Shown here one piece after another: positions 6,125 through 59,390 of a DNA stretch of 64,000 nt. The position numbers and the translations under genes were made by a program. The stretch lies in sequence record NC_061448.1; one strand, written 5' to 3'. Position 1 is the first letter of the stretch. Every line of letters begins with the position of its first letter. Under the pieces are notes generated by a model. It was given only the letters and a program-made list of their open reading frames with translations, was not told the DNA's origin and searched no databases.

Positions 6125-6183
6125 CTTATTCTAACGCTAATTTTGACCTGTCAATAAACACAAACCGAACTCGGGGTACTCAC

Positions 6184-8751: not shown

Positions 8752-8806
8752 GACTGCGGGGTTACGGCCCCGCCTACTTACTTCTATAGAGAGACACGAC
8801 CATGAC
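8752..8806 (+). repeat. Leader cassette A1 (hairpin plus AGAGAGACACGAC RBS), homologous to 10322-10377
   Basis: GACTGCGGGG-TTACGG-CCCCGC...AGAGAGACACGACCATGAC. Confidence 0.75.
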
Positions 8807-10321: not shown

Positions 10322-10377
10322 GACTGCGGCGTTACGGCGCCGCTCATTATCACTTTAAAGAGAGACACGACTATGAC
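10322..10377 (+). repeat. Leader cassette A2, homologous to 8752-8806
   Basis: GACTGCGGCG-TTACGG-CGCCGC...AGAGAGACACGACTATGAC (compensatory G-C to C-G change). Confidence 0.75.
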
Positions 10378-41547: not shown

Positions 41548-42186
41548 ATGCCAAATCCAAAAGTAGTTGCCAAACTTGCTGAACGTGCTAAACGTACTCC
41601 GCGCGGTCCTTCGTCTGTTAAACCTAAAGCTGCGAAAGAGCGTCACGATAAAGAGTCGATGACAACACCAGAGCACAAGAAAAACTTGCCGCCTGTTGTT
41701 GCTGCGCCTAAGATGCGTGATGACGAGCGTGTGTACTTTCTTGTACACGCAATCTTATCCTCATGGAAATTGAGCGCTGTTACGACTGATGCGAATGCGG
41801 CTGCTACCGGCATTATCAAAGTGTCACGCCGTAAGATTGAAGGTGCCCTGCGTGACCTCAAGAATACGCGCTTCACTAAAATCCCGTCGCTCATTAGCGA
41901 TATTCTGACCGATATGGATCTCTGCAAAGAGTTCGGGCAGTGGGTATACGTCGAACATGATTCGCCTGATTGGATTTTCGTTCGACTGCCTGAGAACAGC
42001 ACACAAGTTATTCGTGCTGACATTAGCTCTGACCGCACGGGTCAAACGTCTGCGGCTGTGACGACCTCTGTTGAAGTGCTGCTGGACGATGCGTACCTCG
42101 AAGACGAGGAAGACGAGATTCCTGAGAACGTCGAATATGACGACGAAGATGAATCTCACGTTAACGAAGAAGAGGAGGAAGAATAA
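41548..42186 (+). CDS. Protein with basic K/P-rich N-tail, folded core and acidic C-tail (212 aa)
   Basis: SD AAGGA; composition. Confidence 0.85.
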   Translation: MPNPKVVAKLAERAKRTPRGPSSVKPKAAKERHDKESMTTPEHKKNLPPVVAAPKMRDDERVYFLVHAILSSWKLSAVTTDANAAATGIIKVSRRKIEGALRDLKNTRFTKIPSLISDILTDMDLCKEFGQWVYVEHDSPDWIFVRLPENSTQVIRADISSDRTGQTSAAVTTSVEVLLDDAYLEDEEDEIPENVEYDDEDESHVNEEEEEE

Positions 42187-42635
42187 TGACCTCTTCAATT
42201 CGTCCGGCATCCGAAACAGCCGCAATGATCATTGAAAACGTCACTCTCTATTCTCAAGAGAAGGGACACGACCATACGCTGCCGCGCTTTAAAATGCCCG
42301 ACACTGCGATACGTCGAATCTCTGGTCATGCTCGCGTTCTGCCTGAAAGTTATATCGAACAGGTATCTATCGAGCTACAACAACTCGACTGGATGATGAT
42401 GCGATACAATGCAGGCGAGTTCCTCTTTCTGCACTTTGATATACCGAAGAACTGGACGCGATTGAGCGCGAAGCGTGTTGTGCCAAACGACGACCCTAGC
42501 GCTGAGTACGATACGTGGACGTTGCCTGAGCTACAGGGCTTCGCTCAACGTAACGACTTCTTACAGCCCGACGAAGAGGGGTTTCACGATAGAGCGTCAT
42601 TGATTCGCGCTATCATGCGAGGCGAGACTCACTAA
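42186..42635 (+). CDS. Hypothetical protein with C-terminal HeH-like module
   Basis: YDTWTLPELQGFAQRNDF...DRASLIRAI. Confidence 0.75.
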   Translation: MTSSIRPASETAAMIIENVTLYSQEKGHDHTLPRFKMPDTAIRRISGHARVLPESYIEQVSIELQQLDWMMMRYNAGEFLFLHFDIPKNWTRLSAKRVVPNDDPSAEYDTWTLPELQGFAQRNDFLQPDEEGFHDRASLIRAIMRGETH

Positions 42636-42684
42636 GCAATAACGAGCGGGGCAGTATATAGCTGCCCTGCTATCTGCGAAGTAT

Positions 42685-42738
42685 GCAGAAAACTGGACAA
42701 AATCGTGGTTGCTATCTGAAAGCGACCTATGATATACT
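42685..42738 (+). promoter_or_regulatory. Conserved phage promoter, copy 9
   Basis: GCAGAAAACTGGACAAAAT; 33 nt; TG-A-TATACT. Confidence 0.85.
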
Positions 42739-42776
42739 AGATGCAGACGCAATAGTGCGTCGCACACAAAACACAT

Positions 42777-42790
42777 ATACTGAGGAGTAT
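42777..42790 (+). promoter_or_regulatory. SD in GAGG tetraloop hairpin
   Basis: ATACT-GAGG-AGTAT. Confidence 0.75.
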
Positions 42791-42795
42791 TAATC

Positions 42796-44391
42796 ATGGC
42801 ACGTATCGAAACTAACACTAACCTGGTTGGCAAAACTATCGTCCTGCTGAACGGCACCAAAACTAAAATCGAAGATGCAATCGCGTCCGGTTACAAAGTG
42901 AAAGGCCAGACGAAACGTATCGCTACCCGTTGCGTTGTGAAAGAGGGTGCGCACTTCCGTGAAATCGAACGTATGAACCTGAGCCAGCTCGAAGACACCG
43001 GCGAAGGTTACGTTAAGCTGAAAGAAGCGAAAGCTGCTGGTAAGAAAGCTACCGGCAAGAAAGACGCTGTGAAAGAGAAAGCGCCTAAGACTTCTGGTAA
43101 GAAGACTGGCGGTAAAGTCTCGAAAGAGAAAGAGCCGAAAGTTCGTCGCAAATCTTCCGAAGAGCAGTCCGAAGATTATCAGAATCTGGCACACGCTATC
43201 ATCAAAGGCGGCAAGGCGAAACCTGCTGTTGAGATCGAAGCTGTAGACGAAACGCTGACCGACGCTGTTGCTAAACGTCTGGTGGCGCTGCTGGAAAACA
43301 GCGAAATTGCGAAAGTGTGTGCTGACAACAAAACGCCGATCGCTAACGCACTGTCAGTTGCTTACGGTGCTGAGTACGCCGAAGAGAACAACACAATGCA
43401 GATCACGCTGAGCCTGCAATACGCAATGCCGGTCAAAGATACTGCTGTCGCACCTGAGCTGGACGAAGCTGTTGCGAAACGTGCCGCCAAGCTCGCGTCT
43501 AAGAAGATTGGCAAAGTGCTGGCGAAAGCAATCAAAGCTGCGTTCGACCTCGAAGATGCGAACGACCTGCTGCCGGGTACTGTACTGACCACTGACGGTA
43601 CTGAGTTCGTGTTTGTGGGTGAATCTGCTAAACACGCTGGCAAAGCGCTGATGTATAGCGCAGACACTGACGGCTTCAAATCATTCGGCGCTGACAAGCT
43701 GTCCGACTTCGAAATCGTCGCTGATGAAAGCGAAGAAGAAGAGGAAGAAGTCGAAGAAGAAGAAGAGGTCGAGGAAGAAGAAGAGGAAGAAGAAGACGGC
43801 GAAGACGACGACAACGTAGAAGATGACGGTGAGCCGCAAGACGCCGAGTACGAGTTCGTTGCTGTCGAAGCTGATCAACTCGAACTGGTCAACAAGAAAG
43901 TGACCGCGAAGTATCACGCTGCACTCGCTGAACGTTTCGGTGTAGACGAAGAAGCGCTCGCCCCTGGCCTGATGTTGACTGACGGCGAAACAACATTCGC
44001 TTATCTGGGCTGCGATAGCAAAGGCGGGCTGCTGGTAATCGACCTGTCTGACGACGCAGACGAAGAAGACAACGTTCTGGTATACAGCAAAGCTGATATT
44101 AAAACGCTGAACGACTTTAGCCCTGTGATCGATAGCGGTGAAGCTGACGACGCCGAAGAGGAAGACGGCGAAGAAGAAGATACCGAAGAAGAAAACGACT
44201 TCGAAGATGAGGACGGTGAAGAGGAAGAGGACGAAGAAGAAGAAGACTTCGAATTTGACGACGCACCGAGCGAAGACCTCGAAGACCTGTCCGAAGACGA
44301 GCTGCGTGATCGCGCTGTTGAAGCCGGTCTGACTACGCCGCGCAAAGCAGACAAAATGAACGCTGCCCAGCTGCGTAAGCTCCTGAAGTAA
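42796..44391 (+). CDS. Modular protein (531 aa): beta N-domain, K-rich linker, two repeated beta domains, long D/E tracts, C-terminal HeH-like module
   Basis: Repeats LLPGTVLTTDGTEFVFVG / LAPGLMLTDGETTFAYLG; LEDLSEDELRDRAVEAGL...MNAAQLRKLL. Confidence 0.9.
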   Translation: MARIETNTNLVGKTIVLLNGTKTKIEDAIASGYKVKGQTKRIATRCVVKEGAHFREIERMNLSQLEDTGEGYVKLKEAKAAGKKATGKKDAVKEKAPKTSGKKTGGKVSKEKEPKVRRKSSEEQSEDYQNLAHAIIKGGKAKPAVEIEAVDETLTDAVAKRLVALLENSEIAKVCADNKTPIANALSVAYGAEYAEENNTMQITLSLQYAMPVKDTAVAPELDEAVAKRAAKLASKKIGKVLAKAIKAAFDLEDANDLLPGTVLTTDGTEFVFVGESAKHAGKALMYSADTDGFKSFGADKLSDFEIVADESEEEEEEVEEEEEVEEEEEEEEDGEDDDNVEDDGEPQDAEYEFVAVEADQLELVNKKVTAKYHAALAERFGVDEEALAPGLMLTDGETTFAYLGCDSKGGLLVIDLSDDADEEDNVLVYSKADIKTLNDFSPVIDSGEADDAEEEDGEEEDTEEENDFEDEDGEEEEDEEEEDFEFDDAPSEDLEDLSEDELRDRAVEAGLTTPRKADKMNAAQLRKLLK

Positions 44392-44417
44392 TCTCGTAAC
44401 ACTGTAACACTGAAATA

Positions 44418-44444
44418 AGATGCGGTTCATACAGAGCCGCATCT
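44418..44444 (+). promoter_or_regulatory. Intergenic 11-bp hairpin (processing or stability element)
   Basis: AGATGCGGTTC-ATACA-GAGCCGCATCT. Confidence 0.6.
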
Positions 44445-44457
44445 CTGACAACTAAGC

Positions 44458-44471
44458 TGATTGAGGAATCA
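44458..44471 (+). promoter_or_regulatory. SD in GAGG tetraloop hairpin
   Basis: TGATT-GAGG-AATCA. Confidence 0.75.
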
Positions 44472-44475
44472 CACT

Positions 44476-45888
44476 ATGTCAAACGCAAATGCAAACCTGT
44501 TGAACGCTCGTGTACGTCGTCTGGACGGTACTGTAACCTACATCAATAAAGTAAATGGCAACGGTTATAGCACCAACGCGAAAGGTCCGCAGATTCCGGT
44601 CAAGCGTATTGTGCTTGCTGGCAAAACGCTGAAAGAGATTGAGTCGCCGTTAGCGAAAACTGAGCACGTTCTGATTGACGGTATCACTGTGAAGCTGAAC
44701 AAGCGCCAGCAGAAAGACCTGCGCAACGACGAGATCGACGTTGATACAATCAAGCCTGACTTTAGCTCTCTGGTGTATATCGACCCTGAGACAGGCAAGC
44801 CCGCTGCTGCGAAAGCACCGAAAGCTGCGAAAGCTGATAAGCCTAAAGCAGGGCTGAAAGCAACACGCGAGCGTAACGAAGCGAAAGGTCCTTCACTCGC
44901 AAATCAGGTCGACGCAGTGATCGCTGGCGCTAATAGCGTAGCGAAACGCGCCGATGCAGCGAAAGCGTTTGGCATGTTGTGGAAAGATTTGAAAGTTGCC
45001 AAGGGCGTTGACGTTGTGAAAGCTCTTGGTCGTAGCTATGTGCGTAAAGCGCTCAAAGCTCTGGACACCGAAGCTGCTGACCTGACCGAATCAGTCGATA
45101 TGCTGCCGTCTGATAAAGTTGATCGCAAAGCAGAACTGGCACACACAATCGACGCGACCATCGCTGATGCTGATACGCAAGACCGTCGCAAGATGTTGAG
45201 CGAAGCGTTCGACATGGACTGGAAAGACGTTAAGAAGCACGGTGGCAAGGGCGTCATCAAGCACATGGGACGTAAAGCTGCCCAGTCTGCTGTGAATCGT
45301 CTGCGTGAGGGCGTTAAGCAAGACACGTTCATCAAGCAAATGCCTATCGCGCTGAAACGTCTGATTCAAGACGGTAATCTGACGCTGAACAAAGCGCAGA
45401 TCGAACGTGTGCTGGGTGCGCTTGACCTCGACGTGAAGTTCTACGATGTGGCAATGCAAACCCTGCTGGGTAATCTCAAGCTGTCCCTCGACAAGTCTAT
45501 TGAGAACCCGAAAGTGAAAGAGAAGAAAGCGAAGCACAAACTTGCAGTGCCGACCTACGCTTCTGAAAAAGAACAGTCCAAGCGTGTGCGCAAAATGACT
45601 ATCAAGCTCATTAAGCCGCCGAAGAAAGAAATGGAAGCGGCAAGAGCGCACATGAAAGAATCGAAAGCAGTCATCGCCAAGAAGCTGGGCATCAAGTCAT
45701 CTGATGTGAAGCGTGGCCTGATCTGCTACAAGCCGAACGGTGTTGAACTGATGTTCGTCGCGTGTGACATGACCGGCCCTGTCTTCATCGAGAAAGACGG
45801 TAGCGAATGCGTAATGGCACACGCCAACGTAGCACACACCTTCAATCTGACTCTGGGCCCTAAATCTGAACTGGATGCTGCTGTATGA
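44476..45888 (+). CDS. Basic K/A-rich modular protein (470 aa), distant paralogue of 42796..44391
   Basis: Shared N-domain L(D/N)GT.T.I...GY...EIE; shared C-terminal beta domain; two internal about 70-aa repeats with AF...WKD(L/V)K. Confidence 0.9.
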   Translation: MSNANANLLNARVRRLDGTVTYINKVNGNGYSTNAKGPQIPVKRIVLAGKTLKEIESPLAKTEHVLIDGITVKLNKRQQKDLRNDEIDVDTIKPDFSSLVYIDPETGKPAAAKAPKAAKADKPKAGLKATRERNEAKGPSLANQVDAVIAGANSVAKRADAAKAFGMLWKDLKVAKGVDVVKALGRSYVRKALKALDTEAADLTESVDMLPSDKVDRKAELAHTIDATIADADTQDRRKMLSEAFDMDWKDVKKHGGKGVIKHMGRKAAQSAVNRLREGVKQDTFIKQMPIALKRLIQDGNLTLNKAQIERVLGALDLDVKFYDVAMQTLLGNLKLSLDKSIENPKVKEKKAKHKLAVPTYASEKEQSKRVRKMTIKLIKPPKKEMEAARAHMKESKAVIAKKLGIKSSDVKRGLICYKPNGVELMFVACDMTGPVFIEKDGSECVMAHANVAHTFNLTLGPKSELDAAV

Positions 45889-46268
45889 CAAATAACGAAA
45901 TCCTTTTGTCAGGCATGTTCGCTCAACTCTACGCGCGGCTGGTAACGGCCGCAGTATTGAAGACCCACGTGTACTACTCTGACTTAGCGCCGATTGTGTT
46001 CGGCGTTCAACTGTCCGTGATAAGCAGTGCGCAGTACGATGCACTGTGGGGTCTTGTAAAAGAAACCATGCGTGTTGATATATCGCAGGGTAGACCGCCG
46101 CTTGCAGCGCTGTATGTATCACGGGCGTCCGACAGTAAACTGCCCGCTAAGAAATTCTTTCGTGAGTACCACAAGCTCACGGGCAAGCATTTGTCAGAAG
46201 CCGAATGGCAAGCACTCGTCGAGAATGTGTGGAACAACTATGCACCAGATCTTCGGGAGCCATCATGA
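45885..46268 (+). CDS. Putative winged-helix protein (127 aa)
   Basis: VYYSDLA...GRPPLAALYV...P...FF pattern. Confidence 0.6.
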   Translation: MTNNEILLSGMFAQLYARLVTAAVLKTHVYYSDLAPIVFGVQLSVISSAQYDALWGLVKETMRVDISQGRPPLAALYVSRASDSKLPAKKFFREYHKLTGKHLSEAEWQALVENVWNNYAPDLREPS

Positions 46269-46726
46269 AAAAGTCCAAAGTAGCAATTAGTCGCGGTGGC
46301 TACAGACCGTCATCGCAAGAAGAAGCACAAAAGCTGATAGCTGAATTTATTCTCGGTACTATCGGCGTTGACCCTACTGTTATCAGTCAACAAATGCTGT
46401 TGAACGTTGCGAACTATAACTACCTCACGTCTATCGCAGACACGGGTAAGGCAAATGCAGCGAACCAAGCAGCACTGCATAAAACTGTAAAAGAACTTAA
46501 TGCGTTCTGTAGACTGCACAAGATTCAACTGGGATTACTAATTATGCCCCATACATCTGCTAGTGATTACGCTGGCGATGAAGTTGTAGCGATTCCGTGG
46601 GAGCATGTGCAGAAAAACGCATTAAGCCAGTCTGCCATTGCCTCGCTGTTCCAAACAGTTGAAGCCGATGGTTATCCGCAGTTTGTGACTGATGCGAAAA
46701 CAGTAGAGGGATACAATGTTTTATGA
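46265..46726 (+). CDS. Hypothetical protein (153 aa)
   Basis: ATGA coupling, SD GGGAG. Confidence 0.75.
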   Translation: MKKSKVAISRGGYRPSSQEEAQKLIAEFILGTIGVDPTVISQQMLLNVANYNYLTSIADTGKANAANQAALHKTVKELNAFCRLHKIQLGLLIMPHTSASDYAGDEVVAIPWEHVQKNALSQSAIASLFQTVEADGYPQFVTDAKTVEGYNVL

Positions 46727-47996
46727 TCATGTATTCAGCCACGACGAGAAGCAATTGCTTTTGTCTGTGGCAGAATCTAAATATCTGGTGCGGCTAGACT
46801 GCCCAGAGTATTTGAAGAAATCGAAACACGCGATTGAAATTCGTCACACTGTAACTAACCGTGGTGAGCAACGTCGTAGCGGTACAATCACAACTGCATT
46901 CGTACCGCGTATTCATTCTGCGACTGTGCAGCGCCTTGTGCGCGATGTTCGTGACTCTGCTACAAAGAGTTCGTCTGACAATCTCGCTGCGTTGTTTGAG
47001 CTTGGCCTCGGTGTGCCGAAGCAACACGATATTGCAGTGTACCTGAAAGACTACTCGCGTGAGAACGATAAGAAGGGTGTGGGTATCAAGTATATCCGCA
47101 AACTGATTAACGAGTACCACCGCAAGCATCGTCACAGTTTTGCTGGTAGTCGCTGGCTGATGCCCGCAGCGTATACTGCGAACATGCTCAACATGCAGAA
47201 CTTCATTCATCTGAAAGAAGACGGCTACTCGAAGAAAGTAAAAGTACCTGAGGGTGTGCCTGTCGTGTTCATCTACCAGAACACGAATCATGAGAAAGCG
47301 ATGTTCACAATGTGCGACGCATTCATGATAAGCCCACTCGGTTATCCGATGCCGTTCGCGCAAATAGCGTTACGACCTGAGTTCAAAGCTGCACCGAAAG
47401 AGTTCAAGTCTAAAGCGCTGCGCGGCAAAAGCATGTACGCGATGGTCATGGGTATCGTCTACTGGGAAGAAGGAAGTGCGATTGAGAACTTCCGCGAGCT
47501 ACAGGCAATTGACGATGACCCGTACCTGACGCTGCTTAGTGACGAGAAGTACGCTGACCGCCGCTCTGAGGAATATCAAGAGCTGCTGGACAAACGTGCT
47601 GAACTGAACGAGCAAGCGAAACACTGGAACGCAGTGATCGCGAAGTATGGCAGCACAACGCGCACTCTCAAACCCGAGCAAGTCGAGAAGCTACAGAACG
47701 CCGAAGCGTTTTTCAAAGAGCGCAAAGAGTTCATGGACGACTTCGACAAGTTCGAGAAGAAAGAGAACCACAAAGCTGCGAAGAAGTTCGCTGCTGCGAA
47801 AGCGCTGTTTGCCGCTGTTGATTGTGGCACTATCATGGACCGCACGACTTACATGTCCGTGTCGTCTGGGCTTGACGATGTGAATAAGATTCTTACCGGA
47901 TGGGGATTCACAACCGTCAATACTGTTAACGTTAGTTTGAAGAAGTCTATTCTCACATACGACCGCAAGAACGCAAGCCGCGTCTGGTCACTGTAA
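46716..47996 (+). CDS. Hypothetical protein (426 aa) with coiled-coil insert
   Basis: SD GAGGGA; long ORF. Confidence 0.8.
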   Translation: MFYDHVFSHDEKQLLLSVAESKYLVRLDCPEYLKKSKHAIEIRHTVTNRGEQRRSGTITTAFVPRIHSATVQRLVRDVRDSATKSSSDNLAALFELGLGVPKQHDIAVYLKDYSRENDKKGVGIKYIRKLINEYHRKHRHSFAGSRWLMPAAYTANMLNMQNFIHLKEDGYSKKVKVPEGVPVVFIYQNTNHEKAMFTMCDAFMISPLGYPMPFAQIALRPEFKAAPKEFKSKALRGKSMYAMVMGIVYWEEGSAIENFRELQAIDDDPYLTLLSDEKYADRRSEEYQELLDKRAELNEQAKHWNAVIAKYGSTTRTLKPEQVEKLQNAEAFFKERKEFMDDFDKFEKKENHKAAKKFAAAKALFAAVDCGTIMDRTTYMSVSSGLDDVNKILTGWGFTTVNTVNVSLKKSILTYDRKNASRVWSL

Positions 47997-48001
47997 ACCA
48001 C

Positions 48002-48017
48002 TTATCTGAGGAGATAA
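48002..48017 (+). promoter_or_regulatory. SD in GAGG tetraloop hairpin
   Basis: TTATCT-GAGG-AGATAA. Confidence 0.75.
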
Positions 48018-48022
48018 CGCAA

Positions 48023-51000
48023 ATGTCTAATAATAACCTGGGCGCTGCTGCATCATTTGGTTCTGAAACACAAAAGCAGATTAGCGACGAACAACGTCGT
48101 GCTCACTCTGCTGAGAGCGGTCATCTGAACAAATGTACCATCGTTGTTCTGACTTCTCTGAATGCTCACGGTCGCTTCTCTTACATGAGCGCCGACGAGC
48201 AACTGCACGAGAAGTCGATTGAAGGTAAGGTAATGGATCGTCTGCCTAGCCTGATCGAACGTGCAACTGGTCCTTCTACTGACCAGAACAGTGCGTATTA
48301 CATTCTGCATCCAAACAATGGTGTGCCTACTCGTATCGACGAGCGCATCAAAGTGGGCGAAGGTGATGCGGTCATTGTTTCGTATACTGTAAATAAAGCA
48401 GTGTCAGAGATGCACGGTAGTTTGTCGCTCGCTCTTTTCAGTGCAGGCGAAAGCGACCTGTCAGACTTGGCAGCCGAGTTTGGGGTTCACTCTATCTCGA
48501 TTGTCGAAGAAAGCAAAGCCGGTAATTACATTCAGGCACTCGCCGCTCAGGTGGAAGCTCTGCAAACTGTAAATATCACAAGCATTGATGAAACTGATGG
48601 TGCTCTCGATAAAGCGGTAATTGATTACAGCGCGTTGCCAGCTAACCCTGTTACTGTGCTGTCTGGTGCTGTGCGTACTTTCATCATGCAAACTATTGGC
48701 GGCGAGATCGTTGCTGCAATTCCAAATAACGGAGAACTGAACGTGAAACAACCTACCAACGCAACGCCTGTAAACCTGAGCGAAGACTTCGACGCAGAAG
48801 ACGAAGTTGTTGATCAGCAGGACGGCGGCGACGAAGAAGAAGTTGCTACTGGCACTGACCTGTTCGGCTACAAAGCTGAATCGCTGTCTGTTGAGCAAAT
48901 GACCGAAGCGCTTGAAGCGATTGGTTATGATCTGACTGCGATGAACGAAGATGGTATTCGTGAGTCGTTCGATACTGAACAAGCCATCTGGCTGGAAAAA
49001 GCTGACGGCGCTCAGTCTTCTGACGAAGAAGAAGTTGACGGCGAAGCTGACGACGAAGAAGACGAAGAAGAAACCGAAGACGGTGACTTCGACGCTGTTC
49101 AATTCCTCGCATCTGTGCTGGTTGCCGAAGAACTGGACCGTGCCGGTCTGAAAGTTCTGATTCGTACTCAAGACCTTCCGGTGATGAAGAAAGACACCGT
49201 TGAAACTCTGACTGCGAAGCTGCTTGAGCTGGTCGAAGGCGCAACCGAAGAAGAGATGGTTGAAACGCTGAACACCTTCGTAGATGCTCTGCAAGAGCAC
49301 GAAATCGCCTGCCCGAACATGCTGGCCGCTCTGTCTTCTGACGAAGAAGAAGACGAAGACGAAGAAGATTCTGAGGAGGAAGATGAAGACTCCGAAGAAG
49401 AGGACGAAGATGAAGATTCTGAGGAGGAAGAAGACTCCGAAGATGACGATGGTGATGACCTGCAGGAGCAGATCGATGCTGTCACTGATCCTCTCGACTA
49501 CTTCCAGTTCACCGGCGGTGCACTGACTGCGGAACAACGCGCTGCTGCTGTTGCTGCTATGGGCGAAGACGCATCTGCGATGACTATCGTTCAGGTAATG
49601 AAAGCGTTCACCCGCATTCAAAGCCAGACCAGCCCTATCGCAATGATCGACGATGAAGCTGACCTTACGTCGAACGTTGACGAACTTCGTGCGCTGCTGA
49701 GTCAGTACGACGAAGCGACCATTCAGCACGTAGCTGAAAGCCTGGGCATCCTCGTTGACGAGTGCGAAACCGCTGACGAAATGATCGAAGCGATTGCTAA
49801 CGGCGGTAACGAAGACGACTTCGCCGCAGTTGAAGAGATCGCAACTAACTACGGTATCGACCTGTCCGAAGTTGCAGACGGCGCTGACCTGGACTTTGTT
49901 GACGCACTGCTTGCTGTGCTGCCAGCGTTCCTGAACGACGACGAAGTTGCCGAGCAGGACGAAGACGAAGAAGAAGACGGCGAAGTTGACGAAGAAGATG
50001 AAGTCGAAGCTGATGGTGATGCCGCTGCTGAAAACGATCATCTGAAATTCGTTAAGTCTGTTGACACTACCAATCGCGTCGGCCCGATGCTGACTGTCGA
50101 TATGGACCAGACGCTGATCATCAACTTCACTCTGACTGACGGTGACACTTACTCACCGATTGAAAGCGAACTGTCTGACATTAACGGCTTCAACTACCGC
50201 TACCCGTTCAACCTGGGCAAAGCTGGTAAAGCGCCGGGCGCGATGCACCTGCCAGCGCAGTCTCTGCTGGACATCATCGAGCGTACCAGCACTACTCGCT
50301 TCATGGCTGACCCGTCAACGTTCGATGTTGCTGCGTGGTCTGAAAGTCTCGAAGCGACTCTGGAAGATGAAATCGCTTCCTCTCTGTATGCTGGCCGTAT
50401 CGAAGAAGGCATGGACCCGAACGAAGCCGGTCTTGTTGTCGGTGAGTTCATCGACGAAGAAGAAATCGCACAAGCCGCTGAGCTGGGTTACATCGACGAA
50501 GATCAGTTTGCAGAACTGCAAGGCGACCATCTGCCGATTGCAAGCCTGTACGGTGCTAAGTCTCGCGTTCGTCCAGTGCAGGTTGATACTGCTCACGTCG
50601 CGCTGCACACCACTGTGATGAACGTTGCAGTCCCTGGCTTCTGGGGTGACTCTGATGTTTCTCTGCTGGTACAAGCTGCTGTCAATCGCGTTATCGCTCT
50701 GGCGGGTACCGTTGAAGGTATCAAAGTGTACGCGGGCTTCACGTTCGAATCTGCTGCACTGCTGAACAACGACCGCCTGTTCGAAGCGCTGACCGCACTG
50801 CGTGGCATGGAAGGCGTACAGTCTTACTCTGCTGCTGACGCTGCGAACTTCGACGACGCAGAAGACGTGATCGAAGTAGCTGGTGCTCTCGACGCTCGCG
50901 ACCTGCCGCTGTCTATCCTGTCTGGTGGTCTGGCTGCTGCGACGTTCGACAATGGCGGTGACCTGACTGTGCTGGTTCAATGTTCTCCTGAGGAAGAAGA

Positions 51001-51037
51001 ATCCGAAGAAGACGAAGAAGACGGCGAAGACGAATAA
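48023..51037 (+). CDS. Very large, extremely acidic modular protein (1004 aa) with several HeH-like helical modules
   Basis: Folded N- and C-terminal regions separated by D/E tracts; ESLSVEQMTEALEAIGY, EELDRAGLKVLI...VETLTAKL, SQYDEATIQHVAESLGI...ADEMIEAI. Confidence 0.9.
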   Translation: MSNNNLGAAASFGSETQKQISDEQRRAHSAESGHLNKCTIVVLTSLNAHGRFSYMSADEQLHEKSIEGKVMDRLPSLIERATGPSTDQNSAYYILHPNNGVPTRIDERIKVGEGDAVIVSYTVNKAVSEMHGSLSLALFSAGESDLSDLAAEFGVHSISIVEESKAGNYIQALAAQVEALQTVNITSIDETDGALDKAVIDYSALPANPVTVLSGAVRTFIMQTIGGEIVAAIPNNGELNVKQPTNATPVNLSEDFDAEDEVVDQQDGGDEEEVATGTDLFGYKAESLSVEQMTEALEAIGYDLTAMNEDGIRESFDTEQAIWLEKADGAQSSDEEEVDGEADDEEDEEETEDGDFDAVQFLASVLVAEELDRAGLKVLIRTQDLPVMKKDTVETLTAKLLELVEGATEEEMVETLNTFVDALQEHEIACPNMLAALSSDEEEDEDEEDSEEEDEDSEEEDEDEDSEEEEDSEDDDGDDLQEQIDAVTDPLDYFQFTGGALTAEQRAAAVAAMGEDASAMTIVQVMKAFTRIQSQTSPIAMIDDEADLTSNVDELRALLSQYDEATIQHVAESLGILVDECETADEMIEAIANGGNEDDFAAVEEIATNYGIDLSEVADGADLDFVDALLAVLPAFLNDDEVAEQDEDEEEDGEVDEEDEVEADGDAAAENDHLKFVKSVDTTNRVGPMLTVDMDQTLIINFTLTDGDTYSPIESELSDINGFNYRYPFNLGKAGKAPGAMHLPAQSLLDIIERTSTTRFMADPSTFDVAAWSESLEATLEDEIASSLYAGRIEEGMDPNEAGLVVGEFIDEEEIAQAAELGYIDEDQFAELQGDHLPIASLYGAKSRVRPVQVDTAHVALHTTVMNVAVPGFWGDSDVSLLVQAAVNRVIALAGTVEGIKVYAGFTFESAALLNNDRLFEALTALRGMEGVQSYSAADAANFDDAEDVIEVAGALDARDLPLSILSGGLAAATFDNGGDLTVLVQCSPEEEESEEDEEDGEDE

Positions 51038-51049
51038 TAACGTCTGAAC

Positions 51050-51077
51050 AAGCGGCTCGAAAGGGCCGCTTACTTTT
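51050..51077 (+). terminator. Rho-independent terminator
   Basis: AAGCGGCTC-GAAA-GGGCCGCTT-ACTTTT. Confidence 0.8.
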
Positions 51078-51092
51078 CTCGGGGATCTGTAA

Positions 51093-51917
51093 ATGTCAGA
51101 ACAGAATCACGCTGCTAACATCATCGAAATGATGGAACGCAAAACGCAAGACCTGCATCAAATGACCGACAACTTCAAACAAGCTGATGGTCTGAAACAA
51201 GACGCCGAACGTGAGCTCCGTGTGCAGGCTCAGGACAACGTTAGCTTGCGCTTGAAGATGCGCCGTACCGAGCGTGAACATACCGCTCAAATCGCACTGC
51301 GCGATGAACGCATTCAGGAAGTGGTTGGATTCTGCAACGAGCAGTCCGCAGAAATTCGCACACTGAAAGCTGAACTCGAATCTGTAAAGAGTAAACACGA
51401 AGCGGCAAACCCGCTGCCGTTTGCTCTGCATATGATAATGTGTGCTGGTGTTAATCACTACCACACAATCATCCAGCAACTCGCTAACGGTACTGTAAAT
51501 CGTGAAACGAACAAAGTTGCTCGCGCACTTGCGCAACTGAACCGCACAGACACGGTAACTAAGCAGCCTTCGCTGTATCGCTCTGTTGCTCAGTATTGTT
51601 CTGCTGTTGCTGTGGACGTACCTGCTGGCTCAACACTGCTGGTGGAGATTAAACGCCACATCGAAGCGAACGTCGACCTGTTCCTGAAAGACGTGCAATA
51701 CGAACAGTCTCGCGCTGTCTTATCGCAAGTGTGGGAAGCGCGTCGTAAAGCTGCTCACATGGGCTTTGGTGCGCGTAACATCTGCGAAGCATTTGACTGG
51801 TGCCCTGCTGCGCACGAAGACGACGCAGACAAAGTGGAAGACGATGAAGAATACGAAGAATTGTTCTGTGATTCGCTTCTGAAAATTTGTACTTTCTTGA
51901 TTAAAGATAGCTTTTAA
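51093..51917 (+). CDS. Coiled-coil hypothetical protein (274 aa)
   Basis: Heptad-rich first 110 aa. Confidence 0.8.
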   Translation: MSEQNHAANIIEMMERKTQDLHQMTDNFKQADGLKQDAERELRVQAQDNVSLRLKMRRTEREHTAQIALRDERIQEVVGFCNEQSAEIRTLKAELESVKSKHEAANPLPFALHMIMCAGVNHYHTIIQQLANGTVNRETNKVARALAQLNRTDTVTKQPSLYRSVAQYCSAVAVDVPAGSTLLVEIKRHIEANVDLFLKDVQYEQSRAVLSQVWEARRKAAHMGFGARNICEAFDWCPAAHEDDADKVEDDEEYEELFCDSLLKICTFLIKDSF

Positions 51918-51918
51918 G

Positions 51919-51965
51919 AATCTGTAAAAGTTACCTGCAATCGAATCTGTAAACACTAATTGAAG
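51919..51965 (+). promoter_or_regulatory. Two AATCTGTAAA motifs (candidate middle/late promoter)
   Basis: 51919-51928 and 51944-51953, the latter followed by CACTAATTGAAG. Confidence 0.6.
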
Positions 51966-52012
51966 TTCGAACCGAGCGACAAGCTCACACTTATAAATCC
52001 CGGAGCATTACA

Positions 52013-52567
52013 ATGGCTAAAGTAACTAAAGGCACTTCACTGGCACCTACCCTGGCTTCTCGCATCGCTAAAAAATCTGGTTCCATCAGCACCTCTAAAG
52101 TGAAGCCTGCTGACCTGCCGCACGACATCCTGATCGAAACAGTTCAGGCTGTTGAGCTGATTGGTTTCATTACTGACCGTACTGAAAACAGCGTTACCAT
52201 TCGTCACAAACGTGGACACGGTTCTTCTGCTCAGATCGTTTCTACTTTCGGTCCTAACCAAATCCTGTCTGTGCTGGGCGAAGCCGGTTCTCACGGTAGC
52301 GTAATCGCAAACATCAGCGCTCCGGTGCGTGAGTACAAAGGCTTCACCGTTAAGTACGTTGGCAACTTCATCCACGCGACCTCTGTTGAAACCGGCGAAG
52401 TCGTTCACATCAACACCGCGCTGCCTGGTTACAACGTTCGCCCGACCGTGAACGAAACTGCTGCTGCTAAAAAGTACGGTACTGCCGCGCCTGTGAAAGC
52501 AAAGAAAGCTGACAAAGGCGATAAAGGCGCTAAGCCTGCCAAACTGGTTAAGAAAGCAAAAAAGTAA
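52013..52567 (+). CDS. Beta-rich protein with basic K/A tails at both ends (184 aa)
   Basis: SD GGAG; strong codon bias; KKYGTAAPVKAKKADKGDKGAKPAKLVKKAKK. Confidence 0.9.
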   Translation: MAKVTKGTSLAPTLASRIAKKSGSISTSKVKPADLPHDILIETVQAVELIGFITDRTENSVTIRHKRGHGSSAQIVSTFGPNQILSVLGEAGSHGSVIANISAPVREYKGFTVKYVGNFIHATSVETGEVVHINTALPGYNVRPTVNETAAAKKYGTAAPVKAKKADKGDKGAKPAKLVKKAKK

Positions 52568-52599
52568 TAAAGTCTGACGAAGACTTTTAACTGAACTTT

Positions 52600-52681
52600 C
52601 GAAATCTGTAAACATTAAGTATGCAGCGAGATAAAATGTTCTCGCTGCCTGTCTCTCGAAATCTGTAAATCTTAATTGAAG
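52600..52681 (+). promoter_or_regulatory. Two CGAAATCTGTAAA motifs flanking a 9-bp hairpin
   Basis: CGAAATCTGTAAACATTAAG (52600) and CGAAATCTGTAAATCTTAATTGAAG (52657); GCAGCGAGA/TCTCGCTGC. Confidence 0.65.
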
Positions 52682-52716
52682 CAACATCGCTTCTAATCAA
52701 ACAGGAAAAACAAATC

Positions 52717-53514
52717 ATGGCTAAAGCTGCTAAAGCAACCGTTAACACCGCAACTAAAGTTCTGGCTCAGATGCTGGGTGTTGTAGTAGAAAACGCGACC
52801 GACAAAGAAATCGCTGCGCTGCTCACTTCTGTCGGCCTGACAGTTTCCGGTGGTAAAGTTGTTAAAGCTGATAAAGCTGCGAAAGGCGGTAAGAAAGCGA
52901 AACCTGCTACCGTCGCGCAAATCGTCAAAGCGATCAAAGACGAAGAAGCAATCGACCTGGCCGGCGTAAGCGAAGACGACCTGCGCGAAGCGGTTGTCAA
53001 AGCTAAACTGTCTACCGCCAAGAAAGCCAAGGCGCTGGACGAAGAAGAACTGCTGGAGCTGATTACTGATCAGTTCGGCGGTGAAGAAGAGTCCGACGAG
53101 GACGAAGAGGAAGACGAAGACGAGGACGAAGAGTCCGACGACGAAGATGAAGACGGCGACGACGAAGACGACGAAGACGACGACTCTGATGATGAAGAAG
53201 AGGACGAAGACGACGAAGACGAAGACGGCGACGATGAAGACGGCGACGATGAAGACGAGGACGACGAAGACGAAGATGAAGACGAGGATGAAGATGAAGA
53301 TCTCGACCTCGATTCACTCGACGAAGACGAACTCCGCGCCCTGGTAATCGAACACAAGCTGGCCTCTGCCAAGAAAGCGAAAAAGATGGACGAAGATGAA
53401 CTGCGCGAACTCTGCGAAGAACACTTCGGCGGCGAAGATGACGAAGACGACGAAGAAGAAGATGAAGACGACGAAGACTTCGACGATGAAGACGAAGACG
53501 AAGACGACGAGTAA
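52717..53514 (+). CDS. Polyacidic protein (265 aa): basic N-region, HeH repeat, about 70-residue D/E tract, second HeH repeat, acidic tail
   Basis: LAGVSEDDLREAVVKAKL.TAKKAK.LDEEELLEL / LDSLDEDELRALVIEHKL.SAKKAK.MDEDELREL. Confidence 0.9.
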   Translation: MAKAAKATVNTATKVLAQMLGVVVENATDKEIAALLTSVGLTVSGGKVVKADKAAKGGKKAKPATVAQIVKAIKDEEAIDLAGVSEDDLREAVVKAKLSTAKKAKALDEEELLELITDQFGGEEESDEDEEEDEDEDEESDDEDEDGDDEDDEDDDSDDEEEDEDDEDEDGDDEDGDDEDEDDEDEDEDEDEDEDLDLDSLDEDELRALVIEHKLASAKKAKKMDEDELRELCEEHFGGEDDEDDEEEDEDDEDFDDEDEDEDDE

Positions 53515-53565
53515 TAACTTCTGATCCGGCGCGCCCCTCTAGTTCTGAGTGAATGAGCGAGGGGC

Positions 53566-53645
53566 AAATATTCGAGAAAACTTTTCGAATATTTTTGTAA
53601 AAAGTTTCAAAATTTCTTGCAGACGTATGTTGAATATAATAATGT
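53566..53645 (+). promoter_or_regulatory. AT-rich promoter region with palindrome upstream of the H1-like gene
   Basis: AAATATTCGA...TCGAATATTT inverted repeat; TATAAT at 53635. Confidence 0.55.
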
Positions 53646-53732
53646 ACGTCTACAGGAAATCAAACCCTGAACAAATTTATCTTTTCATCCAGCGGTGAAA
53701 ACGCCGCATCAAATATAAAGTAAGGATATATC

Positions 53733-54260
53733 ATGTCTAAGAAAATCATCAGCGGCCTGAACAAAGAAATCAAAGCCCTGGACAAATCTGAAAAAGCTCT
53801 GGTTAAAACTGCTGCCGGTCTGAACAAAGAAGCCGAAGCGATTGCTGCACGTCGCGAAGGCCTGGCTGCTCAGGTTGAAGCTCTGGCTAACGGCGGCGAA
53901 GCTGCTCCGGCTAAAGCTAAGAAAGAGAAAGCGGCTAAGCCTGCTAAAGCAGAGAAAAAAGCGAAAGCTGAAAAGCCTGCTAAAGCTGAAAAAGCTGGCA
54001 AGAAAGCTAAAGCAGAAAAACCTGCTAAAGCTGAGAAAGCCGCTAAAGGCGAAAAGAAAGCGAAAGCTGAAAAGCCTGCTAAAGCAGACAAAAAAGCGAA
54101 AGCTGAAAAGCCGGCCAAAGCTGATAAAAAAGCTAAAGCTGAAAAAACCGCTAAGCCTGCTAAAGCAGACAAAGCCGCCAAGAAAGTGAAAGGCGACAAG
54201 AAAGCCAAAGCTGGCAAGCAGAAGAAAGAGTCCGAAGACTTCGACTTCGAAATGGAATAA
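53733..54260 (+). CDS. Histone H1-like (K/A/P repeat) nucleoid protein, 175 aa
   Basis: N-terminal coiled coil, then about six KAKAEKPAKA(E/D)K repeats, acidic end ESEDFDFEME; compositionally like Hc1/Hc2/AlgP. Confidence 0.85.
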   Translation: MSKKIISGLNKEIKALDKSEKALVKTAAGLNKEAEAIAARREGLAAQVEALANGGEAAPAKAKKEKAAKPAKAEKKAKAEKPAKAEKAGKKAKAEKPAKAEKAAKGEKKAKAEKPAKADKKAKAEKPAKADKKAKAEKTAKPAKADKAAKKVKGDKKAKAGKQKKESEDFDFEME

Positions 54261-54293
54261 GCAAGTAATCGCGCACTAGCGGTCACTTGATCG

Positions 54294-54325
54294 AAAGGGC
54301 AGCGCTGACGAGCGTTTGCCCTTTT
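54294..54325 (+). terminator. Rho-independent terminator
   Basis: AAAGGGCAG-CGCT-GACG-AGCG-TTTGCCCTTT-T. Confidence 0.8.
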
Positions 54326-54358
54326 GTCATATCTACACGACTTTTTGAGGTATTCCCA

Positions 54359-54853
54359 ATGTCTGCCGAACATCTGCTTAACGACGACCTGCCTGACGAT
54401 ACTCGCCCGCTCAGACCCGCCCCGGAATCTGCTAAACCTACCTACTACGACTTGATGACGCTACGCTTAGAAGCTGGTGCTCGTCTTGCCCGTGCTATCA
54501 AAACATTGCGTGATGCTAACGTTCTCCCTACGTCAGGTAACGGTTCTACACTTCTCACTGCCGCTCTCGAAGTAGCCGAACGTTACTTCGCTGATATTTG
54601 CATGGGGCTCGTACCAGTTCGTGAAGGTACCGACGTATGCACAATCAAGATGCGTGAAGACCTTCCTGCGTGTGTCGAAGCGTTTCGTATTGTCGTTATG
54701 GAACATGCTCAACGTGAAGCACTGGAGCGTGAGTGTCGAAACATGATCGCTGATGGTAACGGCTTCAAACTTCTCACTCAGCCTCAAGTGCTGCATCTCG
54801 AAAACAAACACGTCTGCGATGGAGGTTGCAGTCATGGCTCAGAAACTCTCTGA
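54359..54853 (+). CDS. Hypothetical protein (164 aa)
   Basis: SD GAGGT. Confidence 0.75.
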   Translation: MSAEHLLNDDLPDDTRPLRPAPESAKPTYYDLMTLRLEAGARLARAIKTLRDANVLPTSGNGSTLLTAALEVAERYFADICMGLVPVREGTDVCTIKMREDLPACVEAFRIVVMEHAQREALERECRNMIADGNGFKLLTQPQVLHLENKHVCDGGCSHGSETL

Positions 54854-55577
54854 ACAAATCAACCGCTATTTCAATCTCATGGAATCAATCCGTGAGCAAC
54901 TGTACCGCGTTCTGCCTGTATCTGATCGCTATATGTGCATCGTCAGTTTCAGCACCCAACTACAGGCTCTCCAGTGTGTGCTGGTAAACAAAGAGTCGCT
55001 GATGGAAGCGAAGCTCATTGAAGGTCTGACTGGCGCCGAGCTTACTCTGTATGGTCAGTATCTGCAAACTGCCGAACAGTGGGTTGCTGGTGGTATGCAA
55101 TCTGATTATCCGTTCACTCAAGACAAGGATGTGTATGCAGAGTACCGCAGCCTGACGCGCGACGAGCAAATGCCTGTGCCTGAAATGGAAGAGGACGACG
55201 AAGACCTCGACGAGCAAGAGCTAGATAATCTGCGCACCGCAATTCTCTGTGCTGACAAGCCGACTCTGATGCAGATGTTTGCAGACGAAGGCTTAGGTAC
55301 AAAGGGTAGAGCCGCAGATATGGATGCTGGCGAATTGCAGGATGTTCTGTGCGAACACTATGGTCTCAACCCTGACGTCGATGTGAAATTGGTTGATGTT
55401 GCTGGCGAACTGGTTAAGCGTTTCGAGAACATGCCGAAGCACAAGCGCCGTGCAGCACTACAACATCTGCCTCTGGACGAGATGCACATTCTCGCTGATG
55501 CGTGGTGTATTGAGAAAGCGCCTCATGAAAGCACTATGCGAGCGCTGATTAGCGATCATATACGTCGTCGTACTTAA
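54834..55577 (+). CDS. Hypothetical protein with HeH-like modules (247 aa)
   Basis: SD GGAGG; DKPTLMQMFADEGL...MDAGELQDVLCEHYG. Confidence 0.8.
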   Translation: MAQKLSEQINRYFNLMESIREQLYRVLPVSDRYMCIVSFSTQLQALQCVLVNKESLMEAKLIEGLTGAELTLYGQYLQTAEQWVAGGMQSDYPFTQDKDVYAEYRSLTRDEQMPVPEMEEDDEDLDEQELDNLRTAILCADKPTLMQMFADEGLGTKGRAADMDAGELQDVLCEHYGLNPDVDVKLVDVAGELVKRFENMPKHKRRAALQHLPLDEMHILADAWCIEKAPHESTMRALISDHIRRRT

Positions 55578-55587: not shown

Positions 55588-55640
55588 GCATATTGTTGGA
55601 CAGAATGAGGGTAGCGTCTAATACTTTAGTATGATATAAT
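55588..55640 (+). promoter_or_regulatory. Conserved phage promoter variant upstream of the topoisomerase operon
   Basis: TTGGACAGAAT; 32 nt; TG-A-TATAAT. Confidence 0.75.
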
Positions 55641-57740: not shown

Positions 57741-59390
57741 ATGGCAGTTAAGCCGAAGAAAGTTAAAGTCGTTAAGAAAGCGACTGCGGTAGCGAAGCCT
57801 GCAAAGGTTAAGTTGAAATCGAAAGCTGTTGCTGTCGATGATATGCCGAAGAAGAAAAAGAAGAAAGGCGAAGTAGCAGAAACGAGTACAGGCACTTCGC
57901 TGTACCCGATGCTTGGTCAAGACGAGTCGCTCATTCGTGACGAGAACCTCGCTGACTATACACGACGCGCTCTCTTCCAGTACGGTTCATACGTTGTTGA
58001 AGACCGTGCTATCGCTGACTACCGTGACGGCCTCAAGCCTGTGCACCGTGCGTTACTCTGGTCACTGTCTGACTTGGGGTTACGCCCAGGCGGTGCGTTC
58101 AAGAAAGCTGCACGTACTGTTGGTGATGCGTTAGGTAAGTATCACCCACACGGTGACGCTGCTTGTTACGGTGCGATGGTAACGATTGCAAACACAGTGC
58201 CTCCTGCTGTAGCTGGTCAAGGTAACTGGGGTGACCCGGTAGCACCTGCCGCTGCGATGCGTTACACCGAAGCGAAAATGAGTAAGTTCGCGGGTAGCTT
58301 CTTGCTTGACCCTGACTATCTCGAAGTAACGCCGATGGTAGACAACTTCTCGAACGATATGAAGTTGCCTCTGTACCTGCCCGCGCTATTACCGTACATG
58401 TTGTTCAACGGTAGTGTGCCGGCGCCAGCTTACGGTGTGAAGTGCGGTAACCCATCGTTCAGCTTTACGTCAGTTGCGAAAGTCGTGTGTGATATGCTCA
58501 ACGGCAAAGAGTACAGCGCGAAGAAGCTCGCTGACACGCTCAAAGTCAATCATGAGTATGGCTGTCTCGACGTAAGCTCTGATGAAGACTTCCTCACGCT
58601 CATGTCTACTGGGCGCGGCAAAGTCACATACGAACCGCAGATGAAGATCGACGAGAAGACGAAGACGATCACGATTCAAACGTATGTGCCGGGCGGTATG
58701 TCGAACAACGCAACCATCACCAAGAAGCTGGAGAAGATTGCAGAGTGGCAGGGTGTCGTGTCTGCATCAAACGCCAGCTCGAAGAAGAACAAAGACGCGG
58801 GGCCATGGGGCGCAGCGTTTGCGATTAAGTGTCGTGGTAGCGAAGACCAGTTGTATGAGATTGCAACCAAAGTGCAGCGTGAAGTTACCTCCGCGATTAA
58901 CTACTCGCTGGGTGTGACAGTTCGCCGTGCTGATGCCTCGAACAAGTTCATGTACCTGTCATACGTGAACTACTTCAAAGCGTGGGTTGCGTATCGCATT
59001 AAGCTGGAAGTTGCGATGCTCAAGAACAAGATGGCCAAAGCAGAGAAAGCATTACATCTGCAAGAGGTATACTTGTGGGCAGTAGACAACATGGACAAGC
59101 TGCTTAAAGCTCTGCCTAAAGCGCTGGTGGCAAGTGACCCTGACGCAACGCTTGCGAAGCTGTGCAAGATTCCTGTTGACGACGCGAAGATCATTCTCGA
59201 CCGTCAAGTGCGTAAGCTCGCTAAACTTGAACGTGCAGGACTCGTCGCCAAGATTAAAGAAATCAAGGCGGAGATTGCAGAGTATAAAGCTGGTCTGAAA
59301 GAGCCTGGAAAATATGCCGCAAATGGCACTGCTGCAAAAGTTAAGGCTTATCTCAAATCACCAGATGATAAACTTCCTGTAGGTCTATGA
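57741..59390 (+). CDS. gyrA: Type IIA topoisomerase breakage-reunion subunit (GyrA/ParC-like, 549 aa, no C-terminal beta-propeller)
   Basis: RDGLKPVHR, KKAARTVG, KYHPHGD, AAAMRYTE; long K-rich N-extension. Confidence 0.92.
   Translation: MAVKPKKVKVVKKATAVAKPAKVKLKSKAVAVDDMPKKKKKKGEVAETSTGTSLYPMLGQDESLIRDENLADYTRRALFQYGSYVVEDRAIADYRDGLKPVHRALLWSLSDLGLRPGGAFKKAARTVGDALGKYHPHGDAACYGAMVTIANTVPPAVAGQGNWGDPVAPAAAMRYTEAKMSKFAGSFLLDPDYLEVTPMVDNFSNDMKLPLYLPALLPYMLFNGSVPAPAYGVKCGNPSFSFTSVAKVVCDMLNGKEYSAKKLADTLKVNHEYGCLDVSSDEDFLTLMSTGRGKVTYEPQMKIDEKTKTITIQTYVPGGMSNNATITKKLEKIAEWQGVVSASNASSKKNKDAGPWGAAFAIKCRGSEDQLYEIATKVQREVTSAINYSLGVTVRRADASNKFMYLSYVNYFKAWVAYRIKLEVAMLKNKMAKAEKALHLQEVYLWAVDNMDKLLKALPKALVASDPDATLAKLCKIPVDDAKIILDRQVRKLAKLERAGLVAKIKEIKAEIAEYKAGLKEPGKYAANGTAAKVKAYLKSPDDKLPVGL

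Follow-up and report, generated by a model that had tools for sequence, protein, structure and literature searches.

The final 64 kb of the genome of Erwinia phage pEa_SNUABM_1 (MZ443776.1; Alexandravirus; 266,939 bp), hereafter the window (64,000 nucleotides from record NC_061448.1), carry a run of genes for strongly acidic and strongly basic proteins, g319 to g330, which is the subject of this report. The region examined is 100% identical to pEa_SNUABM_1; window positions equal record positions minus 202,939, and gene numbers follow the locus tags (g319 is pEaSNUABM1_00319). All coding sequences of the deposited record are labelled 'hypothetical protein', and the RefSeq copy names the topoisomerase genes only. 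A first-pass annotation had marked positions 41548-55577 as a cluster of disordered proteins of opposite charge and a candidate phage chromatin or condensate system. The open reading frames that it listed match, at their starts, the GenBank coding sequences pEaSNUABM1_00317 to 00330; the core from g319 to g330 (42796-55577) is conserved as a unit, whereas the two genes at the 5' end of the cluster, g317 and g318, are not. The genes of the core are as follows (aa, amino acids; charges are net charges).

42796-44391, plus strand: g319, acidic, 531 aa, -74
44476-45888, plus strand: g320, basic paralogue of g319 without acidic tracts, 470 aa, +28
45885-46268, plus strand: g321, 127 aa, near neutral, its start overlapping the end of g320
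46265-46726, plus strand: g322, 153 aa, neutral
46716-47996, plus strand: g323, lineage-restricted, 426 aa, +12
48023-51037, plus strand: g324, acidic, 1004 aa, -194
51093-51917, plus strand: g325, 274 aa, -10, with a coiled-coil-like N-terminal part and an acidic patch near the C-terminus
52013-52567, plus strand: g326, basic, 184 aa, +15
52717-53514, plus strand: g327, acidic, 265 aa, -98
53733-54260, plus strand: g328, basic, 175 aa, +27
54359-54853, plus strand: g329, 164 aa, -7, conserved in five of six enterobacterial genera
54834-55577, plus strand: g330, 247 aa, -19

The acidity ascribed to these proteins is borne out at the scale of the 267-kb genome, in which g324, g327 and g319 are the first, third and fifth most acidic open reading frames. 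The basic members (+15 to +28) are no charge outliers, and more basic open reading frames occur elsewhere in the genome (+65, +45). Strong ribosome-binding sites and the codon bias of highly expressed genes had also been proposed. Shine-Dalgarno-like sequences do precede the module genes, and codon bias is strong: g326 and g328 use CTG for 100% of leucines and ACT or ACC for 94-100% of threonines, a bias greater than that of the tail-sheath genes and the strongest host-like bias among the genes compared.

The order of g319 to g330 and the net charges of their products are kept in nine lineages of jumbo phages (Alexandravirus, Sasquatchvirus, Yoloswagvirus, Salmondvirus, Rivsvirus, Yersinia phage fHe-Yen9-02, PaBG, Lu11 and NCTB), a synteny comparison suggested by the first-pass annotation that upholds its view of a linked system of charged proteins as opposed to a chance neighbourhood. 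The block is syntenic, and lies directly upstream of topoisomerase II, in Y3, fHe-Yen9-02, Yoloswag, JA11 and pEa_SNUABM_5. Distant counterparts run from gp131 to gp122 in Pseudomonas phage PaBG, from genes 0154/0155 to 0164 in Pseudomonas phage Lu11 and from genes 073 to 081 in the marine phage NCTB, in the latter again immediately upstream of gyrB. Charges are kept at 30-60% identity or less, the proteins often being less than 35% identical across the nine lineages. Within the block, the genes for a beta-core protein, a protein with a long aspartate/glutamate (D/E) tract and a lysine/alanine (K/A)-rich protein are always adjacent and in unchanged order, with the following net charges and lengths in the nine lineages.

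Beta-core protein (g326 position): +11 to +17; 171-194 aa
Poly-D/E protein (g327 position): -98, -90, -89, -100, -97, -91, -93, -99, -100; 150-294 aa
K/A-rich protein (g328 position): +27, +30, +27, +28, +26, +27, +31, +25, +28; 168-202 aa

Because hidden Markov model matches of the low-complexity module proteins carry high bias scores, counterparts of g327 and g328 were assigned by position, architecture and charge, and their E-values were given little weight. Both g326 and g324 have relatives only within the PaBG/Lu11/Alexandravirus-type phage group. Three product names in the related genomes appear to be low-complexity artefacts: 'putative valyl-tRNA synthase' for the K/A-rich protein of pEa_SNUABM_5, 'Large-conductance mechanosensitive channel' for that of NCTB (NCTB_079) and 'putative polyphosphate kinase' for the acidic Lu11_0155.

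Two of the acidic proteins, g319 and g327, share a building block. All six enterobacterial genera have a single helix-linker-helix module of about 35 residues at the end of g319 and two copies of it in g327; g330 has a weak copy (residues 150-177, E 0.0015). In g319, a small N-terminal domain, a basic linker and two D/E tracts precede this C-terminal module; residues 446-530 match residues 149-233 of g327 (hhalign, 98%), and the N-terminal 58 residues are paralogous to residues 1-56 of the basic g320 (hhalign, 91.5%, E 9e-7), so that modular paralogy ties g319, g320 and g327 together. Orthologues of g319 range in net charge from -56 to -118. In g327, a small N-terminal helical region is combined with two copies of the module (83-121 and 200-238) and a D/E tract; the tract, described earlier as about 70 residues of almost pure D/E, is indeed long, and by measurement spans 83 residues (123-205) of which 88% are aspartate or glutamate. 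The helix-linker-helix module bears some likeness to SAP/HeH domains, which stays below curated cut-offs, with SAP recognised in 2 of the 18 copies (best E 0.005) and Ish1 in one (E 0.028). A profile built from the 18 copies and run against the sequences of the Protein Data Bank (PDB) retrieved no SAP/HeH entry, only chance Nudix-type matches (E of at least 0.045).

The third acidic protein, g324, is not disordered as had been proposed: in its AlphaFold2 model the predicted local distance difference test score (pLDDT) is at least 70 over 725 of the 1004 residues, and low-confidence acidic linkers make up about 17%. The model places alpha/beta domains at residues 35-240 (N-terminal) and 670-990 (C-terminal); between them stand four small helical modules split by disordered D/E linkers, and an acidic tail closes the protein. 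Orthologues carry net charges of -174 to -201. Fold matches in BFVD are a PaBG protein of 356 aa (E 4e-6) and two proteins, of 420 and 289 aa, that probably belong to NCTB and Lu11, respectively. These are the exact lengths of PaBG gp127, NCTB_076 and Lu11_0159, all at the g324 position, and judged by length and position the three matches would be these proteins. On this mapping, both folded end domains of g324 would be ancestral, and its array of helical modules and acidic linkers would be an expansion in the enterobacterial clade. A Foldseek search with the g324 model returned a SAP domain (E 1.5) and a Rho_N protein (E 0.41), neither significant.

On the basic side, the description of g326 as a beta core with basic tails holds, AlphaFold2 giving an all-beta core at residues 36-150 with pLDDT above 90; of the two tails, the N-terminal one is basic and the C-terminal one K/A-rich. 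Its counterparts are PaBG gp126 (E 4e-22), NCTB_077 (E 3e-21) and Lu11_0160 (E 1e-13). The adjacent g328 had been called a histone-H1-like K/A/P repeat protein. It is K/A-rich (K 30%, A 27%) and net positive, but it is a polyampholyte with 16% glutamate plus aspartate and only 4% proline, and the likeness to H1 is one of composition only. It begins with a coiled-coil-like region of about 55 aa, continues with degenerate K/A/E(P) repeats over about 110 aa and ends in a conserved acidic-aromatic tip, a three-part layout that recurs in its orthologues, including PaBG gp124 and Lu11_0162. At the DNA level the repeats are degenerate (60-85% matches), and therefore it is the composition that is maintained, with no recent expansions. 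A word-indexed search with the N-terminal region of g328 gave no match. An acidic-aromatic tip also ends several g326 orthologues; by analogy, they bring to mind the acidic C-terminal tails found in single-stranded-DNA-binding proteins of bacteria and phages.

The two other basic proteins lie upstream of g324. For g320, net charges range from +22 to +31 among the orthologues of the six enterobacterial genera; for g323, orthologues range from +12 to +17. The product of g323 is probably globular; a HMMER search of 1.84 billion clusters with it retrieved only 14 representatives, every one of them from the same lineage, and it matches NCTB_075 (E 4e-13) and Lu11_0158 (E 2e-4). Among the remaining genes, g321 is kept in the six enterobacterial genera and in NCTB (NCTB_074, E 5e-6), g325 is conserved in position and poorly so in sequence, and g330 matches PaBG gp122 (E 1.5e-4), Lu11_0164 (E 3e-4) and NCTB_081 (E 2e-3). 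The overlap of starts and stops around g322 suggests that this gene and its neighbours are co-translated within an operon. Further basic proteins were noted near the module in PaBG, namely gp136 (141 aa, +24, K 20%, A 27%) and gp120 (218 aa, +28).

Searches of PHROGs, Pfam and NCBIfam with all module proteins returned families of unknown function or sub-threshold noise only; there was no match to any annotated PHROG, and Pfam gave no family of known function for the PaBG and Lu11 counterparts. Foldseek found nothing significant in the PDB for g326 or g324, and the matches in BFVD were limited to uncharacterised relatives; for the g326 model, no PDB entry reached E of 0.001 or below (best E 0.047, template modelling score 0.18). 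Specific candidates were considered and set aside. A linker histone of the H1/H5 type is rejected for g328 because no winged-helix domain was found (Pfam at E of 1 or below, NCBIfam) and the tail is 16% acidic. Chaperones of the nucleoplasmin, NAP, SET or prothymosin type are rejected for g319, g324 and g327, none having a Pfam or NCBIfam match and the g324 model having no PDB fold. For a DNA mimic of the Ocr/ArdA type among the acidic proteins there is no Pfam match, and in the g324 model the acidic stretches are linkers of low confidence. An HU/IHF, H-NS, Fis or Alba fold is rejected for g326, its model having no PDB match and its sequence no Pfam match.

The non-coding sequence around the genes gives indications of when they might be expressed. 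Generic consensus scans showed no enrichment (14 sigma-70 sites against 10 ± 3.4 expected, 19 terminators against 17 ± 4.3) and were uninformative, and Rfam recognised no family in the window; the useful signals came instead from reading the intergenic regions. Three motif classes were defined in this way and then scanned genome-wide, as promoter-like patterns and not as mapped transcription starts. Class A consists of an upstream element with TGGACA followed about 30 nucleotides later by an extended -10-type element (sigma-70 type). It is limited to the plus strand at record positions 210-263 kb, where it precedes many small genes as well as g317, g319, g331 (topoisomerase II) and g333, and it probably represents the early promoters of the phage. 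Class B, with the core CTGTAAA, is co-oriented with genes in 24 of 24 nine-base matches, and its exact ten-base form occurs 19 times, where chance would give about 0.5. Genes behind this motif include those for SbcD and a DNA methyltransferase, a ParB-like gene, two DNA polymerase genes and, behind a close variant of it, the clamp loader gene. The GenBank record of Lu11 annotates the class B motif as 'putative middle/late promoter', and two copies precede the poly-D/E gene of that phage. Class C (CTAATTT-type), co-oriented with genes at 28 of 29 sites, lies 25-40 nucleotides before start codons of the minus-strand block and precedes both tail-sheath genes and the portal region; the scan found no copy within 41.5-55.6 kb. 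The elements in and just before the module are the following.

41299, plus strand: TGGACA of the class A site before g317, with a -10-like element at 41336
42693-42738, plus strand: class A site before g319, with TGGACA at 42694 and the extended -10-type element at 42730-42738
51050-51071, plus strand: intrinsic-terminator-like hairpin after g324, with 9 base pairs (6 G-C) and a T-rich tail; a hairpin stands in the same place in other genera
51919-51955, plus strand: two class B motifs before g326, with CTGTAAA at 51922 and 51947; one or two copies in five of six genera
52603-52672, plus strand: two class B motifs before g327, with the core at 52606 and 52663; two to four copies in all six enterobacterial genera
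53567-53654, plus strand: upstream region of g328, with an AT-rich palindrome (53567-53575 with 53585-53593)
53618-53627 with 53645-53654, plus strand: 10-bp inverted repeat before g328, overlapping sigma-70-like hexamers at 53617-53622 and 53640-53645 (17 nucleotides apart)

These signals are conserved beyond pEa_SNUABM_1. Upstream of g319 orthologues, a related class A-like element stands in five of six enterobacterial genera, and in the inverted repeat before g328, compared across six genera, 90% of cells are paired and two pairs show compensatory changes, the AT-rich palindrome standing about 40 nucleotides further upstream; the repeat could be either an operator or an RNA hairpin. On the strength of the upstream motif classes, g319 to g324 would form an early operon ending at the hairpin at 51050-51071, and g326 and g327 would be expressed together with the replication genes; g328 appears to stand behind its own conserved promoter-like region. 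Over the window as a whole, class A upstream elements were noted at 7939, 9434, 13411, 30849, 35877, 39324, 41298 and 42693, with degenerate forms at 55597 and about 59430, all on the plus strand. The sole convincing class C motif of the window (6086-6183) precedes g251 (6184-7821; 545 aa, +28), which has no family match.

We tentatively read g319 to g330 as one conserved functional module of a jumbo-phage supergroup, encoding an abundant polyelectrolyte system that acts on DNA during the replication phase, within the cell and outside the virion; as a whole this reading falls somewhat short of an even chance. Because order and charges are conserved and the upstream motifs are of the early or replication type as opposed to the virion type, the module probably acts on DNA inside the infected cell. 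Under this proposal, the module would be made before and during DNA replication. Two presumably abundant proteins, g328 with its putative oligomerising N-terminal helix, K/A/E-rich tail and acidic-aromatic tip, and g326 with its beta core and lysine-rich tails, would coat or bridge DNA through these lysine-rich tails. The products of g319, of the large multidomain g324 and of g327, whose charge stays at about -95 in all lineages, would serve as protein polyanions of fixed valence that bind, buffer, deliver or displace g328 and g326, and possibly host DNA-binding proteins, with the helix-linker-helix modules of g319, g327 and, weakly, g330 as docking elements. The net charge held at the g327 position (about -95 over 150-294 aa) and at the g328 position (about +28) points to electrostatic stoichiometry as the selected trait.

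Several observations weigh against this proposal. The charges of the module sum to about -320, far from balance, and the acidic proteins could be aimed at host proteins and not at the polycations of the phage itself. No histone, H1, nucleoplasmin, NAP or other known chromatin or DNA-binding domain was recognised in any member, and the SAP/HeH likeness of the shared module stays sub-threshold. The AlphaFold2 models are built on alignments of only 20-22 sequences, expression timing is read solely from the motif classes, and the list of PaBG virion proteins discussed below is shallow, being restricted to Coomassie-visible bands. As a hypothesis, the idea of phage chromatin or a condensate is compatible with the data. 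Its stronger form, in which the polyanion of about -95, the polycation of about +28, the beta-core polycation, g324 and g319 form with DNA a complex coacervate that serves as a membrane-less, shell-less replication compartment ancestral to the PaBG/Lu11/Alexandravirus supergroup, we consider unlikely, and we treat as speculative the description of the system as a 'shell-less alternative to the phiKZ nucleus'.

The acidity could alternatively be directed at the host, with g319, g324 and g327 imitating nucleic acid and soaking up nucleoid proteins, restriction or defence nucleases or RNA polymerase, and with the basic partners regulating or neutralising them until needed. Extreme negative charge is a hallmark of phage DNA mimics (Ocr, ArdA, Arn), the protein at the g327 position stays near -95 however long it is, and the putative g319-g324 operon lies behind a class A motif, as do many small early-looking genes of the window. 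Yet the proteins resemble no known DNA mimic in sequence or fold, and their D/E tracts are predicted to be disordered linkers as opposed to rigid DNA-shaped surfaces. The same charges are moreover found in phages of Pseudomonas, of Enterobacterales and of a marine host, whereas host-specific decoys usually diversify, and the unvarying position beside two conserved polycations speaks for partners of the phage's own; we regard such decoys as a fairly unlikely alternative. That there is no system at all, only unrelated low-complexity neighbours with a neutral compositional bias, would agree with the fact that all the proteins are orphans without a known domain and that the repeats are degenerate. 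Synteny and charge conservation come close to refuting this highly improbable explanation, given that nine lineages with such low identity agree in gene order, domain layout and net charge and that the upstream motifs are conserved too.

A role in the virion or prohead is a further alternative. T4-type prohead cores typically pair an acidic scaffold with basic internal proteins, and g319 to g330 could by this precedent comprise an acidic scaffold or core together with a basic, DNA-condensing 'head filler'; the strong codon bias, which suggests a high copy number, would fit. Set against this, the region lacks the class C motif, g326 and g327 carry the motif of replication genes, and the module stands among replication genes in a strand block opposite to that of the structural genes. 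Fourteen virion proteins of PaBG have been identified (gp202, 215, 240, 213, 76, 257, 94, 191, 83, 261, 80, 81, 214 and 263; PMC7412058), and none of gp122 to gp131 is among these abundant, Coomassie-visible bands (PMC7412058), so that a purely virion-structural function, the outcome that the first-pass annotation had set against its own idea, is weakened. The structural block also holds a late-class pair of opposite charge of its own. On the minus strand at record positions 160662-161342, gene186 encodes a protein of 226 aa and +65 (K 27%, A 17%) with P-containing repeats and few acidic residues, which is closer to an H1 tail than is g328; it has a class C motif upstream and is a candidate for a head-internal DNA-condensing protein. 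On the same strand at record positions 107659-109695, gene142 encodes a protein of 678 aa and -139 in which about 150 residues form a D/E/S tract. The gene has strong codon bias and lies behind a class C motif; the label 'ATPase' of the PHROG family that it matches may be an artefact of annotation. These two are better candidates for head-internal or scaffold roles than the module in the window, and because the pair exists, a virion role for g319 to g330 is less necessary. We hold such a role to be quite improbable; the probability left over falls to functions other than those considered here.

Comparison with known systems places the favoured reading, action on DNA during replication, between several partial likenesses. 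As in eukaryotic chromatin, where H1 acts with prothymosin-alpha, nucleoplasmin, SET or NAP, a K/A-rich polycation is encoded beside a protein with a long D/E tract, both of low complexity and with opposite conserved charges. The module has, however, no winged helix and no nucleoplasmin or NAP fold, and g328 is 16% acidic with 4% proline, which leaves an analogy only. Bacterial H1-like K/A/P-repeat proteins include AlgP, the C-terminal domain of PhaF and the chlamydial Hc1 and Hc2; g328 resembles them in joining an N-terminal helical region to a degenerate K/A-rich repeat tail and differs from them in its many glutamates, its conserved acidic-aromatic tip and its want of any Pfam or NCBIfam match. 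Abundant non-virion phage proteins made with the replication genes, TF1 of SPO1 (HU family) and p6 of phi29, organise phage DNA, the same role as proposed here for g326 and g328; but the module shows no HU/IHF fold or p6 likeness, g326 has no PDB match, and TF1 and p6 lack poly-acidic partners. Ocr, ArdA and Arn are, like g319 and g324 on their putative timing, very acidic phage proteins made early, but they are small rigid mimics, whereas the module has its acidity in disordered stretches of large proteins with several domains, which match those mimics in neither sequence nor fold. With T4-type prohead cores the module has in common that acidic and basic proteins are encoded together; its neighbourhood and upstream motif class are wrong for such a core, and its homologues are missing from the PaBG virion list. 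A phage protein that drives phase separation in the infected cell has a precedent in the transcription condensate of SPO1 Gp27 (PMC13401047), but that protein and its role in transcription switching are unrelated to the module.

In the literature searched the module is undescribed; by function it would be a variant of phage and bacterial histone-like systems, and it has no known relatives by sequence or fold. If it does organise DNA in replication, it would be the first phage system in which histone-like polycations are paired with dedicated poly-acidic partners, a pairing so far known only from eukaryotic chromatin, and about ten 'hypothetical' proteins per genome would gain a role across the jumbo-phage supergroup.

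The genes flanking the conserved core are the following.

41548-42186, plus strand: g317, inside the cluster first proposed and outside the conserved core
42186-42635, plus strand: g318, likewise inside that cluster and outside the core
55712-57739, plus strand: g331, topoisomerase II gene, downstream context
57741-59390, plus strand: g332, topoisomerase II gene, downstream context

Relatives of g317 and g318 are confined to Yoloswag and pEa_SNUABM_5, which is why both are placed outside the core. The topoisomerase II genes stand behind a class A promoter-like site at 55597-55640, and the neighbours of the module further include another topoisomerase-family match and a DnaB-like helicase. In the structural block, an unannotated gap of 1.3 kb (record positions 85557-86895, minus strand) has two class B motifs at its upstream end and no tRNA according to ARAGORN; a gene that was missed, or a non-coding RNA, may lie there. 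Two further pairs of paralogues were seen in the window: g253 and g256 (8802-9422 and 10373-10951), with 23% identity over 142 aa (E 2e-5), and g277 and g280 (19647-21050 and 21892-22380), whose N-terminal 65-74 aa share 37% identity (E 7e-9).

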